A stretch of DNA of 63,812 nucleotides, counting the filler, from Reticulomyxa filosa (lineage: Eukaryota; Protista; Foraminifera): the NCBI GenBank assembly GCA_000512085.1. It is 9 parts of 9 records of this genome, joined end to end, with 100 filler letters (N's around TTAATTAATTAA, not from the genome) between each part and the next. Parts side by side here need not be neighbours in the genome. Positions count along the whole stretch, not along the records: positions 1 to 14,666 come from ASPP01004444.1; 8 more parts are not named here. One strand, given 5' to 3'. The position numbers and the translations under genes were made by a program. Positions 550 to 11,620 of this stretch are shown here, piece by piece. The notes beneath the pieces are model-generated. The model was not told where the DNA came from, searched no databases, and saw only the letters and a list, made by a program, of their open reading frames with translations. How positions within the stretch are numbered: the first letter of the stretch is position 1; every line of letters starts with the position of its first letter.

Positions 550-3500
550 TTACTTCCATTTTACAGTCATTTTAAAGCTGTTGACGTAGAGCTATGATAA
601 AAACAATGCAAACAACCCTTGTATTACACGTTTTGAGTTACACACATGCATACGTAACGTGATGGCCACCTCCGTTTCCGACGTAACGGAAAAGCCGCAA
701 CACATCTCCTTCATCAATGCTCTTAACAGCTGGGTGGTCACTGTCAAAAGTAATGTCTACAGTCTCAAAATCATGAGGTGCCACTGATTTTGGAATTTCG
801 TAGTAGTCACCTTTGAATTCATCCTCGCTTTTAGAATCTTTTTTGATAACAGCCAAATAAAGCATTGACTTTTGATTTCCATAGCTAAATATGCACATCA
901 CATAATTGAATAGAATAGAATAGAAACACGAGGAACCTAAACAATCATTTGTTTTTTTCAAAAAAACTGTTCAACTCACCCTTGGTCTCTCCATTTAAAA
1001 GAAAAATTAATGCTTTCAGCTTGGCAAGGACATTGGACTGCATCATTGAGAAGTAGCTGTCTTTCATCATCCACAGGACCTTCCAGGCTAATGTCTTGTT
1101 TCGCTTTCACCACTGTGTCTTCTCGAGAAGCTGTATTTTTTTTTTCGTTACCAAAATAGCTTGTGCATTTTTATTTGTGGAGAAGAAAGATATTGCATTC
1201 ATAATTGATAGTAAGAGAGATACTCTAGTTTTTCCACCTACGTCCTTTTTTCGGGGCTAGTAAATATACAACAACCATAATTGATATTATAAGATAAAAA
1301 AAAAACAAGCAGAAACAATAAAGCACCCAACCGAGAGTTATCACTGCCAGGAAATTTTTAACGTATAGCTATGTGATCATTCACACAATCACTTGTCAAA
1401 AAACAAAACAAAACATATCTACTATCTATATGTGCATATATGTATATAGACTGTTTTTCCCTCCTCCGCTCTCATTATTCCGTCTATTTTTTTTTCATTT
1501 GATCCAAACTTGATGTCCGCCACCACCTCCGACATAGCGAGCAAATTGTATGGTTGATCCTGTTAATTTCTGAAACCCATTCGGAATTTCTGTCAGTAAA
1601 TTCCTTGGCAACGCCTTCCCAATTATGGGGAGCAATACCGAAACAGTCGTGATCTTGCGCATTGCCAGAGGGATTAACTACACGAACATACAGAGTGCCT
1701 TTCTGGTTACCCCATCCTTGGTCCTTCCAGTCACAACTCACTTTGATGGAACTCACTGAAGAGTCGCATTTCACTGAATCTTTAACTAACAGCTGCACTT
1801 GATCGTTGTACTCGCCCACAAAATAGAGTGAATTGTTTTGAACTGTCACGGTTTTGACTTGTTCTACCATGCACACACAATTATTTATATAATGAGTTTA
1901 ACAAAAAAAAAAAGGGTCAAGTTAACTGAATTTCACAATCGCAACAAACTCTGTAACGAACATCTGTTGATTGACAAGGCACAAGCGATTCCATAAACAT
2001 AAAAACACATTTCCTCTGCTAAAGCAGTCAAAAAAAAAAAAACAAGTAACAAAACTTCGTGTCCACCGCCTCCACCAACATAACGATGGAATTGAAGAAT
2101 ATCTCCTGCGCTGATATTTTTTACAATATCACTTGTAGCGGAAAAAGTTTGGGAGACCTTGGTCCAATTATGTGGAGCAATATTAAAGAGATCATACTCT
2201 TTTTTCTCTTTTCTGTTAGAATCGAAAATACACAGATATAATCTAGACTTTTGATTTCCCCATCCTTGGTCTTTCCATTGACAAGATACGTTAATGGACT
2301 CGACAGCTAAACTGCATTTGATCTCATCACGAACAAGCAATTGTCTTGAGTCATTGTGTTCTCCATAAAAATGGATATCTGAACCTTTCACAACAGCTTC
2401 GGATTTGCTTTGCTTTTCATCATCACCGGAATTGCTAGCTTGTGCTTTTACTCGTTCTGTTTCCAATCTCAACTTTTCTAATTCCAATTGTTGTTGTCGA
2501 TCCGCTTGCAAGCGCCGATATTCTTCTTCTTTTTCTCGCTTATCTTTTTCCTGTTTCAGTTTCTCTTGTTCAACTTTCAATTTCTCCAATTCTAATTTTT
2601 GATTTAACTCACGTTCTTGTCGTAAGTGCTCTTGTTTTTTTGCATCTTCCTTGCTTTGCAATTCCTTATCCAACAGCGCCAGTCTCTCCTTCTCTGCCGT
2701 CTCAATCGCCAATTGCTTGTTCTCCTTTTTTTTTTTTCCCCTCAAAGTATTCCGTCTTTTGTTTTAAAAATACTCGTAAATGGCCAGTTTTAAATCCCAT
2801 TCCTTTCAAATCCTCCTCAGTCAAGTCTTCCCAACTCTCCACCGTATCAAATCCGTCTTGCTCTACACAATTGTTACAAGTCCAAATGGAGTATAATCAC
2901 AATTACCAAGGTTGATTATATCCGAACATATATATGTACATGTATATAAACACACGCATATAATTATAAGTTACTTATTACTATGTACGTATACACTTTT
3001 TTAAAAAAGAATATTTCCCTCCCTCTTTGCACCTTACAAGAAAACTAAAATATGTATATAAAAGACAAAAAAACTCTCTTGTCTTTTCTGTCCCCTTCCC
3101 CCTCCTCTACTTGATTTATTGTATTACATAGAGACAAAAAAATACAATATCAAACGGTACCTAAGAGTTGTAGATAGGAAGTAAGGGTGCCATCGACGTC
3201 AATTTGGATGATTCCATCAGGTGATTTTTTGCTTTTATCCGGAAGCCATTTTTTCAACAACTCTTCACACGTTTCCTTCGGACCTTCATCTCCTTTTGTG
3301 GTGGTTTTTCCCTCTTCTCCTCCTTCCTCATCACTACCTTGATCCTTGTCAAAATTGCGTGGTACGTACTGTTCGTTCTTGCCAATTTTGGGTTTAATGT
3401 GTTCCGTCACGTAATCGTATGCCATGTTGCGATCACCCATTTCAAACAGCCTGGCACGTTTGTACACGTAGTGTGAGTCCTTCTTATACTTGTAAAAGAT

Positions 3501-4757
3501 CTCGTGATGGAATTGCACCTCACAGACTAAGCCCGTTCCTGGACAGTTCAAATTCACTAACAAATCTCGGTATCCAAATGCCACTTCTTTCGGATTGAAG
3601 CGATCTTTTGCACGTAATATCCCGCCTTTTATCGACGTATTCTCATTCGCCATTTTTTTCACTATTGAAAATGCTCGATACAAATCCACAAAGTTGTCAA
3701 ACACAAACGAGCACCGCATTAAGTCCGTCATTTGCTTGTGGTCGCCGACGTATACGTAATAAGTCTATCATGTCATCCATCCCATTTGCAATATTTTGTA
3801 TTTTACGTGTGCAAGCGTCGTTACTACTTTTCGCAACTCATAAATTTTTTTTTTTTTTTTTTTTTTTAAATGTATGGCAAAATTTTAAAAAACGCAACTT
3901 TGTAAAAAGTTCTTTCAATATTTTTACACGAAACCTTTGAATGTTTGAGTGTTTTCACTTTTTGTTTCTTGAATTCGCTCAACACTTGCGAAATAAACTT
4001 TTCAAATGCCGGAAGATACAGATGTTGCGCTCCAAACATCAACGACACAATGTTTGAACCCTTTTTTTTTTTTTTTAACAACAAAAAAAAAAAAGGTGAG
4101 AATAAGATTATGATCGCAGTGAAACATGTAATCAATACATACAAAGTATACGTTGACGTTTACAAAATAATACCTCAGTCAGTGGCTTGGGTTTACGTTC
4201 GTACTCATCCATATCGGGCGCATACACGCTTCTAGCTTTTTCTTGTTCACTTTTATGGGGCGCGTATAGTTCATCATACATTTTTTGTACCAATACCTTT
4301 TTTTTTATGTATGTTATTTTTTTTTCCGCTTTCCGTCCTTTTTCCCCCCCCTAATCTCTTTGCAATACTAAAAAAAAAAAAAAAAAACTGTTGATCGCAG
4401 GAAATCACCCAATTCCAAGACTTGCAAAGAATTCAATAATTCTCTTTCGTCATCTAATGCTCTTTGTTTGGCTCGTCGTAACAGTGTTTGATTCTCCTTG
4501 TCAACCACATTGTCGATGGCTGCTTCAACCAATGAATCCTGCTCTTTCATTCTCTGCAAATGCTGACTTATCATGTCAGTCAATGCCTTTAATCCTCCCA
4601 AGCCAGCTGTTCACACATTCATACACCTTTCATCAATTGTTGTCTTAAAATACGATCACTCATTCTAATTGTATAAATGTACACAAAAAGAAAGCGCTTG
4701 TTTTTCTCCTGTACATGTCGACGACAGCCGCTTGTCTTTTTCTCCAGCTGATGTCAT
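550..4757 (-). CDS. Multi-exon gene: RelA/SpoT-like nucleotidyltransferase + SAM domain + coiled coil + 3 tandem 'DQGWGN' repeat domains
   Basis: Splicing ORFs 3866..4144 and 3150..3731 gives KNIERTFYK|TYYVYVGDHKQMTDLMRCSFVF...RAKDRF...FGYRDLLVN...CEVQFHH...SHYVYK (RelA/SpoT synthetase-type motifs). The exon from 2862 reads EQDGFDTVESWEDLTEEDLKGMGFKTGHLRVF (SAM-like). Three ~110-aa repeats follow. The last exon 550-591 reads LYVNSFKMTVKWK*. The 5' exons and start codon (4757) are tentative. Apparent frameshifts occur at ~2730 (T-run) and ~1555. Confidence 0.75.
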
Positions 4758-5264: not shown

Positions 5265-6880
5265 TTATTTCCATGAGGTTTTAGTCGTTTTTGAGCGATT
5301 TACTGTCAACACCTTCTTAGTTTTGACAACGTCGTTGGCATGAGCAGTGTCTACGCGAAAGGGGTTTGTTTCGTCATAAATGAGCTCAAAATCCCCCACT
5401 TGAGCACTTGTATTCCATGATGCACATCCTTGAGAGATTTGAGTAGAAGGAAAATCTGGTGGCACAACACATGCAAATACATCTTTCAATAGTTTTCTTT
5501 TAACGTCCCGGTCGTTCTTTGTTGTCGCACTTAAAGAAGGTGATGCGTTCACCTCAAGTAACCACGGCTTCAGATCCTCATCCACGAGTATATCATAGCC
5601 ATAGCATTCAAAACAATGTTTGTCATTTATAATTACCTGTGTTTGATCATGTGTATATATGTATGGCATCTATATGTCATAATTTCAAATGTATTATTTC
5701 AAAGTGTGAAAAAGATGTTAGTCCCCTTTTTTTTGTTGCACATAACACTCTGGACTGCAAGTAAAGAATGAATAATGATGACTTTGATTTTTTTGATCAA
5801 CTGGACACTTGCTTCATTTCCGAAAATCCCTTCTACATAGGTGATAAAGTTTTCAAATGACCATTTGTTGCCATGATTGGGATTATAATCAGCTCCATGT
5901 TTTTGAATGGCAACATTGGTCAAATGTATTTCTGTGTTATTCATTTCTTCTTTTTTTAAGGTATATTTCACATTGCTAAAGCGTCCAAAGCCTTGCTTGT
6001 GGAAATATACTCGTAGAGGGCGATAGGATGTGACTAATACATACAATCGTAAATCAAATTTTTTACCACCAATTAACAGTGGCTTCTCAATGTACCGTGA
6101 CACTACATAAGGTTCTTCTTTGTTATGTCCGTATGACGGGCTCCATTTTTTCAATTGTATGAGTTTGTCAATGATAAATATTCCTATGCATTATTTTTTT
6201 TTTTTTTCTTTTTTTGCTGCTGTGCAAGGTAGTAAAAAAATATATGTGGTGCCAAGGGTTTTTTTTTACCTGCTCCTTGGGCTTTGCACGTTGGTTTTAA
6301 TATCCACTTTGTTCCTTTTAGTATTTTTTTAAATTCTTCCTCGAATAAACCGTAGTCATTTGGAAGCAAATAAGTGGACGGCACAAAGTCCAAATGAATG
6401 TACGTGCCATTTGAATTGCGTGCGGCAATTGGATTTCCATTTTTTTCAAGGTTTTTACGGTAGCGTTTAATATTTTTTACCATCAAATCTTTACGTGTCA
6501 GTTCAAAATGGTTTGGAAAATGGTTTATAATTTGATCGTCTCTCAAGCGTACCCCTGACTCGAAATTGAACAATTTTCGAACTCGGGACACAGATGCCCA
6601 GTACACGTTCCATTCTTCATCATCTATTGTCATCTTCCAACCTCTATCTTCTGCATTTTGCAAAAGGCAGTGTTTTTGTAAATCAGTTCGGAAATGGACT
6701 TGTTCCGAACGACTGTCTGCGTGTTTAATGTTTAAAATGTTTGCGTATGCTTGGAATGAGCAAAAAAAAAAAATGTTTAGTGCACAAAAATTTGACAAAA
6801 ACAAACCGAAACAATTACCAACTGGCGTCTGTATGATGTCAACAATTTCAACAAGAACCAGTTTGAGATTGTTATCACAT
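5265..6880 (-). CDS. TTLL1: Tubulin polyglutamylase, TTLL1-like (multi-exon)
   Basis: [68 protein letters not shown] and [32 protein letters not shown] match the TTLL1 subfamily. The start codon is tentative. Confidence 0.9.
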
Positions 6881-7817: not shown

Positions 7818-8411
7818 TATGTATATGTATATATATGTATGTATATGCAAGATCGTCTATCTTTTATATTTCCTTTTTTCTACACACACTCATTTTTTTT
7901 TTTTTTGACGAAACTTGACAAACGTATAATTGGCTCCAAAGTACAAAAGATAGAATAACGGAACCCATTTTGACAGAGACAATATAAGCTGTCCAAAATT
8001 TTTTTTTTTTAGGGTCTTATCCGTTCCCTGGCTCGTCTTGCAAAATTTGAAGATGACAGCCACTGCACATAACATTTTGAAATTGGTTGTGTACCAAAGT
8101 GTAAACATGGCCGGAAATGCATATGATTGTGATGCATTGCTTGTATGCGATTTTTGCGCAAATTGCAATAGCTGAGTTGTTGTTACCCACACAAATGCTA
8201 TTGATATCACCATACCAATATTTTGCGATAATGATTTTATTGATGCTTTCACACCTGTCCTTGCTTCTTCTCCACTCTTTACTATATCGTTTTGGACGTC
8301 TGAGCTGTTTCTACCTATTAAGTTGTTCCTTTCTTCGTCTTTAGAGAGAAAGGATTTGGATTTCCACTGAGTGGAATGCTCTGGACTTGAGTCAAATGGA
8401 ATGTCCTCCAT
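7132..8411 (-). CDS. SLC35F3/F4-like (DMT/EamA superfamily) transporter
   Basis: Multiple hydrophobic helices. Motifs WVTTTQLLQ, FPAMFTLWYTTNF, SALFNSEPAWVYIFSLLIL, FLALLGAFNLLFVWP and YPLFISIGFVLGIPLQLVVD. One intron with a (TA)n tract at ~7785-7915. The 3' end is approximate. Confidence 0.75.
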
Positions 8412-10347: not shown

Positions 10348-11620
10348 TCACCCCCAAAATTGAATTGTTTGATTTTGAGAAGCAGAGAGAATTAGACTGC
10401 CATCGGGTGAAACATCTACTCCTGAAATAAAAACAGAATTTCTGTCTAATTTCAGCAGTTCATGCCCTAATTTTGCATCCCACAATCGAATTGTTCTATC
10501 ATATGAACACGACACAATTGTTTTACCATCTGAAGAAAACGTCACATCAACTACGTCATCTCCATGTCCTCTCAAGCTTCGTATTTCTTTTCCTGACTCC
10601 ACATCCCATATTCGAACAGTTTTATCACTTGAACAAGATACAATGGAATAGCCATCAGGAGAAAACTGTGCTTTTAGTACAGCATTTAAATGTCCTTTCA
10701 AATTATGCACTCTTTCACCTGATTTTATATCCCACATTCCAATTGTATTGTCATCAGACGCCGATACAAGCATTTGACCATTTGGTGAAAATTGAACATC
10801 ATTAACCCCTTTTGAATGTCCTTCAAATGTTTTTATCTCTTGTCCAGATTTCACGTCCCACAGCCGGATTATTTTATCTGATGATGACGACACAATAGTA
10901 CAATTATCTGGTGAAAATTGAGCTCTTGTTATAGTACTTGCATACACTTCGAATCTTTTGATTTCCGTTCCTGATTTTGTGTTCCATAATCGAATTGTAC
11001 CATCAAATGAGCAAGAAATAATCATAGTGCCATCCCGTGAAAACTGTGCATTGTTAACCGAACTTGAATGCCCTTTCAAAATATAAATTTCATCTTCCAA
11101 TGATATATCCCAAATTCGGACTGTCCTATCTTTGGATGTTGAAACAATTCTGTTGCCATCTGGTGAAAATTTTGCGCTTGTTGCAGCATCAGTATGTCCC
11201 GGGAGAACTTTTAACAGGTGAAAGTGTTTGGCCTGTTCATATTGGCCGATTATTTTAGATTACGAATTCAAACGAAATAAAACCAAAAAAATACATAATA
11301 TATACATATGTATATGTACATATATGGAAAAAAAGTCCAATCGAAGCAAATGAGCTGCACTAAACATATCGTGCAATGATTTTGTTGAAATCATCAATCC
11401 ATCCCCAATTAATATAAAATGATCTGAGCCAAGTGTCTATTATTCTCCTTGTTTCATATTCGGTCTGGTTTGTTTATGTTTTATTATGCAACGTAAATTG
11501 ATATCACAGGATTAAGTAAAAAAAGAGGACTCAAAAATACACGTAAAAAAAAAAAAAAAAAAAAGCACTTACAGAACGTGGCAAATGGATTTGTTGAGTG
11601 GGGTTTTTTTTGGGTTTCAT
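10348..11620 (-). CDS. WD40-repeat protein (about 7 repeats) with N-terminal GWIDDF module
   Basis: Regular GH...FSPDG..IVS.S.D.TIR.WD repeats. Upstream exons encode MKPKKNPTQQIHLPRS and TEYETRRIIDTWLRSFYINWGWIDDFNKIIARY (11366-11464). Confidence 0.9.

Follow-up and report, generated by a model that had tools for sequence, protein, structure and literature searches.

A divergent RelA/SpoT-type nucleotidyltransferase joined to SAM-like, charged-helix and predicted jelly-roll segments in Reticulomyxa filosa: a candidate receptor-like protein

Results

Structure of the gene

We analysed a window of 63,812 nucleotides of DNA from Reticulomyxa filosa, a freshwater foraminifer without a plastid. 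The gene studied here lies on the minus strand at 4757-550, on a contig of 14,666 bp, and encodes an N-terminal helical region, a nucleotidyltransferase (NTase) domain of the RelA/SpoT type, a SAM-like segment, a charged helical segment and three repeat units predicted to be jelly rolls. An earlier note on this DNA had placed the start and the stop of the gene at the two ends of this interval and both hold, with an ATG at 4757 and a TAA at 552-550. The gene model comprises 12 exons and 11 introns, every intron being GT-AG. The exons total 2804 nt, i.e. 934 codons and 2 bases, both of which are accounted for by two separately located frame disruptions, and the length is about 933 codons when both single extra bases are skipped. 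The exons were searched one at a time, and natural contiguous relatives were used as proxies for the joined protein, among them P0002 (contig L001), an intron-free relative, 88% identical, from a Joint Genome Institute (JGI) sample.

Exon 1 (43 nt, 4715..4757) carries the start codon, encodes MTSAGEKDKRLSST and ends with the phase-1 donor T/GTACAG; it is kept in similar form in the paralogue C27279 (…KDNHKRVSSCT), with the same T/GTACA donor. Exon 2 (218 nt, 4389..4606) encodes the N-terminal helical region, which matches no Pfam family and is conserved in the foraminiferal clade, in the paralogue C27279 and in the consensus of alignment A3. The rest of this region is encoded by exon 3 (123 nt, 4174..4296), which ends in …YERKPKPLTE. 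Exon 4 (162 nt, 3899..4060) contains the first NTase helix and the K-x3-R-x3-K motif, and exon 5 (604 nt, 3161..3764) the NTase core (~3764-3390), an acidic linker (3344-3273) and the first half of SAM (3272-3162). The exon 3/4 junction, …KPKPLTE/GSNIVSLMF, matches the contiguous relative P0005, and P0002 reads straight through both the exon 4/5 junction (FYK/TYYVY) and the exon 5/6 junction (LL-E-QDGF).

Exon 6 (2056-2862) begins with the part at 2738..2862, which holds the second half of SAM (2860-2738, …EDLTEEDLKGMGFKTGHLRVFLKQK…), continues through an A12 run in a lysine tract (2726..2737) and the helical segment (2404..2724), and finishes with the first jelly-roll unit (2056..2403), in which WKDQGWGNQK is found at 2277-2248, followed by APHNW and by YVGGGGGHE at 2082-2056, next to a phase-0 donor GAA/GTTTTG. 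Exon 7 is a mini-exon (1927..1963) that supplies the last beta-strand of unit 1. Unit 2 is encoded by exon 8 (1510..1863) and, for its last strand, by a second mini-exon, exon 9 (1332..1368). The first half of unit 3 lies in exon 10 (980..1130), which ends in …WRDQG/GTGAGT at an intron position shared with the last unit of contig C4098; its second half lies in exon 11 (659..884; YGNQK…YVGNGGGHH, donor CAC/GTTACG), and its last strand, together with the stop TAA, in exon 12 (550..591).

The joining of the three units to the NTase gene depends on the mini-exons. All units, in the window and on three other contigs, end in '…GGGGH-E/Q' followed by a donor GTTT[T/C/G/A][G/A], which is unusual and conserved, and read-through past this point meets a stop almost immediately in some copies. 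A missing last strand is implied by distant relatives and by contiguous units of C4098 (e.g. HELLVRQFSV). Mini-exons of 37 nt (42 nt for the terminal exon) encode only this strand, with the peptides MFVTEFVAIVKF in unit 1, LYVKNFLAVITL in unit 2, LYVNSFKMTVKWK-stop in unit 3 and LFVNGFKAVINF in the paralogue C27279 (~7824-7860); MFVTEFVAIVKF matches LFVNGFKAVINF of C27279, the terminal LYVNSFKMTVKWK and the contiguous HELLVRQFSV of C4098. Entered in phase 0 and left in phase 1, as exon 7 is, the mini-exons resolve a phase mismatch and therefore tie the three units to the NTase gene.

Single introns between the repeats were rejected, the phase-0 donors after 'H-E' being incompatible with phase-1 acceptors. 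Donors inside Gly codons, non-canonical splice sites and frameshifting at the repeat junctions were all dropped once the 37-nt mini-exons had been found, as was the possibility that the repeats are separate small genes, suggested by an in-frame ATG in repeat 2. The claim that the NTase, SAM, charged helix and three repeats belong to one gene is borne out by the 12-exon GT-AG model. The tandem arrangement of three units also stands, with a correction of their size from ~110 aa to ~125-130 aa each when the mini-exons are included.

The database protein P0001 (ETO32152.1, RFI_04962), labelled 'SAM domain-containing protein' in UniRef, is 100% identical to the locus. The deposited RFI_04962 (497 aa) is partial and mis-spliced: its first residue is the Met of MTDLMR, inside exon 5, so that it is without exons 1-4, and it is also without exons 7-12. 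It contains intron-derived residues in SAM, skips part of the helix and runs on into the intron after unit 1.

The nucleotidyltransferase domain

The six motifs on which the RelA/SpoT assignment had been based are all present on the minus strand at 3925-3450, joined in one frame by canonical GT-AG junctions. KNIERTFYK (3925-3899) lies in exon 4, and exon 5 contains MTDLMR with the catalytic D (3731-3714), (RA)KDRF with its K (3614-3597), GYRDLLVN, i.e. GYRD…N (3575-3552), CEVQFH with E-x-Q (3524-3507) and SHYVYK(RAR) with H..Y (3476-3450). The best PDB sequence match of exon 5 alone was SaEAS (8vx3, E=0.009), over GY…E-V-Q-F-H…H..Y. In an exhaustive search, the NTase exon matched 303 representative clusters at E<=1e-3, a result well outside what chance would give.

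A family alignment, A1, of 49 sequences including the N-terminal flank gave a profile whose matches among PDB sequences were RelP/YwaC (6fgk, 5.6e-9), Tas1 (6ox6, 9.9e-7) and SaEAS (8vx3, 1.3e-4). Taken singly, 16 of the 49 members matched Pfam RelA_SpoT (PF04607) at E<=0.01, the best at 3.1e-6; P0002 gave no match at this threshold. Residues 1-190 of P0002 served as the enzyme proxy for folding, and the AlphaFold2 (AF2) model built with the A1 alignment reached a pLDDT of 90.3. In a Foldseek search with this model, the top 50 of 50 PDB matches were RSH (RelA/SpoT homologue) synthetases, each with a probability of 1.00, and comprised Rel, RelA, SpoT, RelP, RelQ, Tas1, CapRel (rank 34) and SaEAS. 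The family profile and the fold of the proxy carry the assignment proposed in the earlier note, the single-sequence Pfam cut-off not being reached.

The invariant columns of A1 are K-x3-R-x3-K, D-x2-R, the K of KDRF, E-x-Q and one Arg (invariant positions K42, R46, K50, D64, R67, K103, E132 and Q134), and GYRD-x3-N and H-x2-Y are nearly invariant; all the residues conserved in A1 are present in the window gene. In the hidden Markov model (HMM) alignment they correspond to K, K, D, K, G-Y-R, E-I-Q and H-x2-Y of RelP. K42, R46 and K50 align with K, S and K of RelP RvKsfeSivnK and with Tas1 KSRERAMQK, and the N-terminal half of the NTase tracks Tas1 closely. As to the motif order claimed earlier, the catalytic D, ExQ, H..Y and GY are in place, whereas the arginine of RxK and the Ser and His of GYxSxH are not. 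The family instead has K-x3-R-x3-K, which it shares with Tas1, and G-Y-x-S-x-H has become GYRDLL, which keeps G-Y-R but has Asp in place of Ser and Leu in place of His; deviations from this motif are likewise seen in Tas1 and SaEAS. As had been claimed, HD, TGS and ACT domains are absent: no exon gave a Pfam match to HD_4, TGS or ACT.

On the evidence of the alignments and of the model, the domain is a true and probably active member of the RSH synthetase superfamily, in a divergent branch. The contrary possibility is a pseudo-enzyme, in which the RSH fold would serve as a nucleotide-binding or protein-interaction module. The strong divergence of the domain (Pfam 13 bits) and the replacement of the first Arg of R-x-K and of the Ser and His of G-Y-x-S-x-H would fit such a module. 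However, no variation is seen in the metal-binding Asp and Glu, in the Gln or in five basic residues among 49 sequences whose mean column identity is ~29%, a conservation like that of an active site, and the active (p)ppApp synthetase Tas1 has the same K-x3-R-x3-K and D-x2-R variants. We consider a pseudo-enzyme very improbable.

In NCBIfam, exon 5 (3153-3764) weakly matched the last C-terminal stretch of the XopAD/skwp type III effector models and of PRK09169 (E ~0.02, 12 bits), a result that may hint at a related NTase domain ending those effectors.

The SAM-like segment and the charged helix

The SAM-like segment described in the earlier note is present at 3272-3162 and 2860-2738, split by the exon 5/6 intron, and its score in the window stays below threshold: the exon 6 piece gave 13.7 bits with SAM_2 (E=0.07, cut-off 20.5). 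The corresponding linker of P0002 gave 15.9 bits with SAM_1, and its best PDB match was the Caskin SAM (E=0.015), over residues 33-96, the full domain length. At the same position, the relatives P0026 (29.5 bits) and P0015 (27.1 bits) are above the Pfam SAM cut-offs, and P0045 is just under that of SAM_2 (19.2 vs 20.5 bits). The SAM identity is therefore supported at the level of the family.

The helical segment at 2724-2404 contains 23 E, 18 K, 16 L and 13 Q among its 107 residues. It is predicted to be either a coiled coil or an ER/K-type single helix, so that the ~100-aa E/K/Q coiled coil proposed earlier holds as a charged helical segment of 107 aa, the coiled coil being one of its two predicted forms. 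A two-copy complex prediction for the SAM-helix part of P0045 (residues 115-300) scored 0.00, a value that counts neither for nor against self-association.

The jelly-roll units

Each repeat carries the motifs W-K-D-Q-G-W-G-N, A-P-H and V-G-G-G-G-G-H, and the repeats belong to no Pfam family. The AF2 model of unit 1 is a beta-sandwich (pLDDT 78.5). Foldseek found nothing below E=1e-3 for this model in the PDB, and VIA-align returned generic jelly-roll matches only (capsid, TNF/C1q, CBM, MAM; Z<=8.1). The ESM Atlas neighbours of unit 1 are small F-box proteins (TM 0.84) and modules of CBM_4_9 type. In the same resource, the jelly-roll domain is also found in a cluster of 133-aa giant-virus proteins.

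The domain was found in 68 environmental eukaryotic contigs (L016-L083), mostly as a single copy and sometimes with a ricin-B lectin; a zinc ribbon was also seen (L016-L083; P0152-P0156). Judged by these occurrences, the jelly-roll domain (W[KS]DQGWGN … VGGGGGH-x-L and one further strand) is a widespread eukaryotic domain lacking a Pfam model. A metagenome scan for transcripts of close orthologues of the repeat region returned none, the best match being 42% identical.

Frame disruptions

The first disruption is the A12 run at 2726-2737, where one base is extra and the frame moves by +1; a run of A11 would leave the frame intact. In L001, too, a +1 shift is required, at an A10 run of its own (L001 ~880-900). 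Past the tract, the shifted frame preserves E-N-K, for which the window and L001 differ by synonymous changes, and the following helix is conserved there too. The paralogues C27279 and C27602 have no poly-A tract and no shift, and read straight. A GT-AG intron of 49 nt could span the lysine tract in the window, but it was rejected, since its donor is absent in L001 and the residues that it would skip are conserved. That the window and L001 each carry a sequencing error in the same direction at the poly-A tract is possible but not likely, and transcriptional slippage or ribosomal +1 slippage at the lysine tract may be the alternative. Because the shift is shared by an independent relative with a conserved downstream frame, the part downstream of it is likely to be translated.

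The second disruption lies inside jelly-roll unit 2 and is AACA at 1564-1561, where 4 nt stand in place of 3 or 6, outside any homopolymer. It was located by comparison with C30074, a close intact copy, one frame being followed to …NSEWVSEI and the other from GSTIQFARYVGGGGGHQ. Beyond both disruptions, the expected frame is open to the stop, with canonical splice sites and conserved motifs.

These disruptions bear on whether this particular copy is intact. It could be decaying or truncated, yielding at most an N-helical-NTase-SAM protein that stops shortly past the lysine tract, or else one that breaks off inside jelly-roll unit 2, with intact paralogues such as C27279 acting in its place; this possibility is compatible with either reading of the family. 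The extra base in the A12 run and the 4 nt at 1564-1561 speak for decay, the more so as the second site is not a homopolymer, which makes a simple error of homopolymer length less likely, and the equivalent positions are undisturbed in the paralogues C27279 and C30074. Nevertheless, the downstream frame stays open to the stop with its splice sites and motifs, which is unexpected for an old pseudogene in a genome of 36% GC, and the first shift is common to an independent relative with a conserved downstream frame. Moreover, the R. filosa assembly is a draft of 50,809 contigs, which may contain errors. We regard a decaying copy as unlikely.

Relatives and domain architectures

All the close relatives (E<1e-30) that have a source name are foraminiferal (Reticulomyxa, Ammonia, Nonionella, Bolivina and Elphidium), and R. 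filosa itself has at least a dozen paralogous loci. One layout that recurs in this clade starts with the N-helical region and the NTase, continues with SAM and the helix, and closes with a recognition module that varies. The full NTase-SAM-helix-jelly-roll layout is found in the window gene and in C27279, and C4098 shows the SAM-to-jelly-roll tail only, its NTase part being off the contig. In other relatives, NTase-SAM is followed by SPRY (P0045), galectin (P0016), AbfB (P0013), TLDc (P0011) or a C-type-lectin-like module (P0023, with sub-threshold Xlink/Lectin_C matches and DUF7495). The order of enzyme, putative self-association segment and recognition module claimed for this gene is found again, as a layout, in these relatives with swapped C-terminal domains and in the NACHT-WD40 proteins headed by the same NTase branch that are described below.

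On C4098 (1900-4400, minus strand, L084) the end of SAM is followed by four jelly-roll units, two of them contiguous without an intron, and TPR-like open reading frames (ORFs) lie downstream. Several of these units have degenerate motifs (DQDQEN, GQGRG, GLGDGH).

Among 44 close relatives, the NTase is also fused to choline-transporter-like (5), ubiquitin (4), WW (4) and kinesin with EF-hand (2) domains, and to 14-3-3, C1/ZZ and SAP. Among the more distant matches are proteins of Guillardia and Thalassiosira, as well as fusions with TPR or LRR. P0087 (3,127 aa) combines an eCIS-core domain, a RelA/SpoT-like domain and a C-terminal calpain protease, and P0140 (1082 aa) combines RelA_SpoT, Acb1 (anti-CBASS) and an inorganic pyrophosphatase. 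From these two architectures, the divergent branch appears also in toxin-like and counter-defence polyproteins.

RelA_SpoT-NACHT proteins and HD_4 matches in the R. filosa assembly

When the assembly was scanned with Pfam RelA_SpoT, 60 matches came up, 2 of them strong and the others weak (22-32 bits); the weak ones (~58) lie mostly in very long intron-free frames. The one ORF of this kind that was inspected, C11053:3172-8247 (1691 aa), encodes a RelA_SpoT-like domain, NACHT and about 14 WD40 repeats. Its NTase aligned with the profile of the window family over 154 columns (hhalign probability 97.5, E=7e-12), which places it in the same branch as the window NTase. On at least 17 contigs (e.g. 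C6286, C6237, C5800), NACHT was found 0.9-1.1 kb downstream of the RelA_SpoT-like match on the same strand. The NACHT scan of the assembly gave at least 103 matches, 102 of 315 candidates having been scored. From these sequences, R. filosa, a rhizarian, appears to hold a NOD-like receptor (NLR)-like repertoire of the fungal RelA_SpoT-NACHT-WD40 type. The window gene itself gave no NACHT match (Pfam, exon by exon), and NACHT belongs to a separate R. filosa family.

HD_4 matches were found in the assembly only on C8583, C32270 and C7084 (492-885 nt, intron-free). HD_4 scored 174 bits on C7084 and C8583; next to HD_4, C8583 and C32270 also carry the 2 strong RelA_SpoT matches (79 and 70 bits). 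These three contigs are probably fragments of classical long RSHs from a bacterial associate or a culture contaminant.

Flanking genes

A tubulin-tyrosine-ligase-like (TTLL) gene of at least 3 exons (5265-6804, minus strand; Pfam TTL 1e-15 to 2e-40) lies in the upstream flank, on the same strand as the NTase gene. Farther off on this contig, a gene with 6 WD40 repeats in one ORF occupies 10348-11100 (minus strand), and no NACHT was found by Pfam scan in the ORFs upstream of it. The GC content of the contig is 30-41%. The TTLL and WD40 genes indicate ordinary eukaryotic DNA and no bacterial contaminant; together with the 11 GT-AG introns, they uphold the view that the gene is a eukaryotic, intron-bearing one.

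Housekeeping signalling as a possible explanation

The flanking genes and the fusions of the close relatives would also fit a localised housekeeping signalling enzyme, whose partner domains, the jelly rolls included, would only position it and would recognise nothing non-self. Such an enzyme would make a nucleotide second messenger or modify a target in the cytoskeleton, in membrane traffic or in the stress response. The choline-transporter-like, ubiquitin, WW, kinesin, 14-3-3, C1/ZZ and SAP fusions are typical eukaryotic signalling or targeting modules, and the neighbours TTLL and WD40 are ordinary genes. Against this, the same NTase branch heads the large NACHT-WD40 family in R. filosa, and in other organisms, bacteria included, it forms part of toxin-like, Acb1-linked, TPR and LRR proteins. 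In addition, the C-terminal modules of the NTase-SAM proteins are mostly lectin-like or SPRY and are swapped between paralogues, which is the pattern of diversifying receptors. A purely housekeeping role seems to us rather unlikely, while deserving serious consideration.

Discussion

We regard as established how the gene is built, that its enzyme domain is homologous to RSH synthetases and has their fold, that the metal- and phosphate-binding residues are present, and in which order the domains stand. The reading that we prefer, with confidence falling a little short of even, is that the gene encodes a receptor-like protein with an RSH-type pyrophosphokinase as its output, as its architecture and the associations of its family suggest. 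In this reading, the NTase would take the beta-gamma pyrophosphate of ATP and place it on the 3'-OH of an acceptor. The acceptor would be either the 3' end of an RNA or a purine nucleotide, and in the latter case the product would resemble (p)ppGpp or (p)ppApp. The C-terminal jelly rolls would bind a ligand, either a glycan or a protein surface, and SAM and the helix would gather several copies, whose clustering would switch the enzyme on. The NTase would then be the output head of a protein whose logic, by analogy, resembles that of a TRIM protein or of an NLR with an enzymatic effector. A putative role as a sensor-coupled effector is plausible by this analogy. The receptor-like logic is suggested because the same N-helical-NTase-SAM part precedes SPRY, galectin, AbfB, C-type-lectin-like and TLDc modules, and because the same NTase branch stands N-terminal of NACHT on at least 17 contigs.

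Several observations weigh against this reading. With Pfam RelA_SpoT, exon 5 alone reached 13.2 bits (E=0.11; cut-off 27), over profile positions 20-109 of 113. The acceptor substrate is not readable from the sequence, because G-Y-x-S-x-H became GYRDLL. The jelly roll has, to judge from the model, no specific solved relative. General signalling fits as well as immunity, because kinesin, ubiquitin, WW, C1, 14-3-3 and choline-transporter-like domains are among the fusions. With two disruptions, the second outside a homopolymer, this copy may yield a truncated protein. Finally, no RSH hydrolase of eukaryotic type was found in the assembly, whose draft state makes this absence weak evidence; a reversible messenger cycle would therefore be without an identified off-switch.

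A wider reading, which we find doubtful, would join both protein classes into one undescribed foraminiferal system of cell-autonomous defence or conflict based on an RSH-type pyrophosphokinase. One Tas1/RelP-like branch would head two receptor classes, namely NLR-like NACHT-WD40 proteins, in dozens of copies per genome, and TRIM-like proteins in which SAM and the helix would be followed by an interchangeable lectin, SPRY or jelly-roll sensor, the window gene being one case. The product, an alarmone-like nucleotide or a pyrophosphorylated tRNA, would arrest or kill the affected cytoplasm, and the conserved +1 change at the poly-A lysine tract would set the choice between a long, sensor-bearing isoform and a short NTase-SAM isoform.

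Among characterised enzymes, the NTase is closest to RelP and RelQ (SAS2/SAS1; 6fgk, 6ex0, 5ded), which give the best profile match (5.6e-9) and the same fold (Foldseek 1.00, TM ~0.6), share the K, K, D, K, G-Y-R, E-x-Q and H..Y positions, and likewise have no HD, TGS or ACT. RelP and RelQ are, however, bacterial, single-domain and homotetrameric, with R-x-K-x3-S-x3-K and G-Y-x-S-x-H, whereas the window protein is eukaryotic, about 933 codons long, and combines K-x3-R-x3-K and GYRD with an N-helical region, SAM, a helix and three jelly rolls. Tas1 (6ox6), a type VI effector of P. aeruginosa and a (p)ppApp synthetase, is the second profile match and agrees nearly residue for residue in K-x3-R-A-x2-K…Y-x-G-D…D-L-x-R. 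SaEAS (8vx3), an exported alarmone synthetase (PMC12691689), is the third profile match and the best single-sequence match in the PDB. Both Tas1 and SaEAS are toxins or exoenzymes that bacteria secrete, and they come with an immunity protein or a signal peptide. Nothing comparable is seen in the window gene, and the substrate preference of these enzymes is not transferable to its NTase.

The long RSHs (Rel/RelA/SpoT; plant RSH1-3, CRSH) differ from the window protein in having an HD hydrolase and TGS/ACT (or EF-hand), for which the window gene gave no HD_4, TGS or ACT match. The toxSAS and CapRel proteins have an antitoxin that is adjacent or fused (pseudo-ZFD), in a prokaryotic or phage operon, whereas the window gene is a multi-exon eukaryotic gene with a SAM-helix-jelly-roll C-terminus. 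The likeness to TRIM proteins (RING-B-box-coiled coil-SPRY) is one of analogy only: an enzyme at the head, then a helical segment for self-association, putative in the window protein, and at the C-terminus a recognition module that can be swapped, SPRY in the case of P0045. The head domains are not homologous, and ubiquitin ligation in the one case would stand against nucleotidyl or pyrophosphoryl transfer in the other.

Among eukaryotes, a RelA_SpoT effector domain has been described in fungal NLRs (Dyrka 2014, PMC4986451). As in R. filosa, a RelA/SpoT domain of a non-plastid eukaryote is there placed on receptor-type modules, and the RelA_SpoT-like and NACHT genes of R. filosa have the same layout. 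The fungal proteins differ from the window gene in their central NACHT/NB-ARC; the window gene has neither, its SAM and helix being putatively for self-association and its jelly rolls for recognition, and it belongs to Rhizaria and not to Fungi. Synthetase-only RSHs named 'divRel' are known from Dictyostelium, ascomycetes and diatoms (Atkinson 2011, PMC3153485). Like the window NTase, they are divergent, eukaryotic and synthetase-only, without a matching RSH hydrolase in the genome, and a Thalassiosira protein is among the distant matches of the window family. The likeness is one of description and implies no shared clade, and neither the foraminiferal expansion nor the architectures found here were described for divRel. 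The novelty that the earlier note implied for a non-plastid eukaryotic RSH synthetase was thus overstated, divRel (PMC3153485) and the fungal NLR effectors (PMC4986451) having come before. In the library that was searched, no paper turned up on the foraminiferal or Reticulomyxa family, on the NTase-SAM-helix-recognition-module layout or on a rhizarian RelA_SpoT-NACHT-WD40 family.

Alarmone synthetases are seen as enzymes of bacteria and plastids, and it is an old question whether non-photosynthetic eukaryotes make (p)ppGpp-type nucleotides, and by which enzyme. The locus provides a clonable candidate, an enzyme domain of ~180 aa with intact catalytic residues, from a family that is expanded in foraminifera and joined to receptor-type modules. 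If the enzyme is inactive, or if this copy is a pseudogene, the finding shrinks to a divergent domain family with unusual fusions. If it is active, the chemistry of bacterial toxins and antiphage proteins (Tas1, CapRel, toxSAS) would be linked to eukaryotic receptor architectures outside fungi, and a large repertoire of NLR-like proteins with an enzyme as their effector would be demonstrated for Rhizaria.

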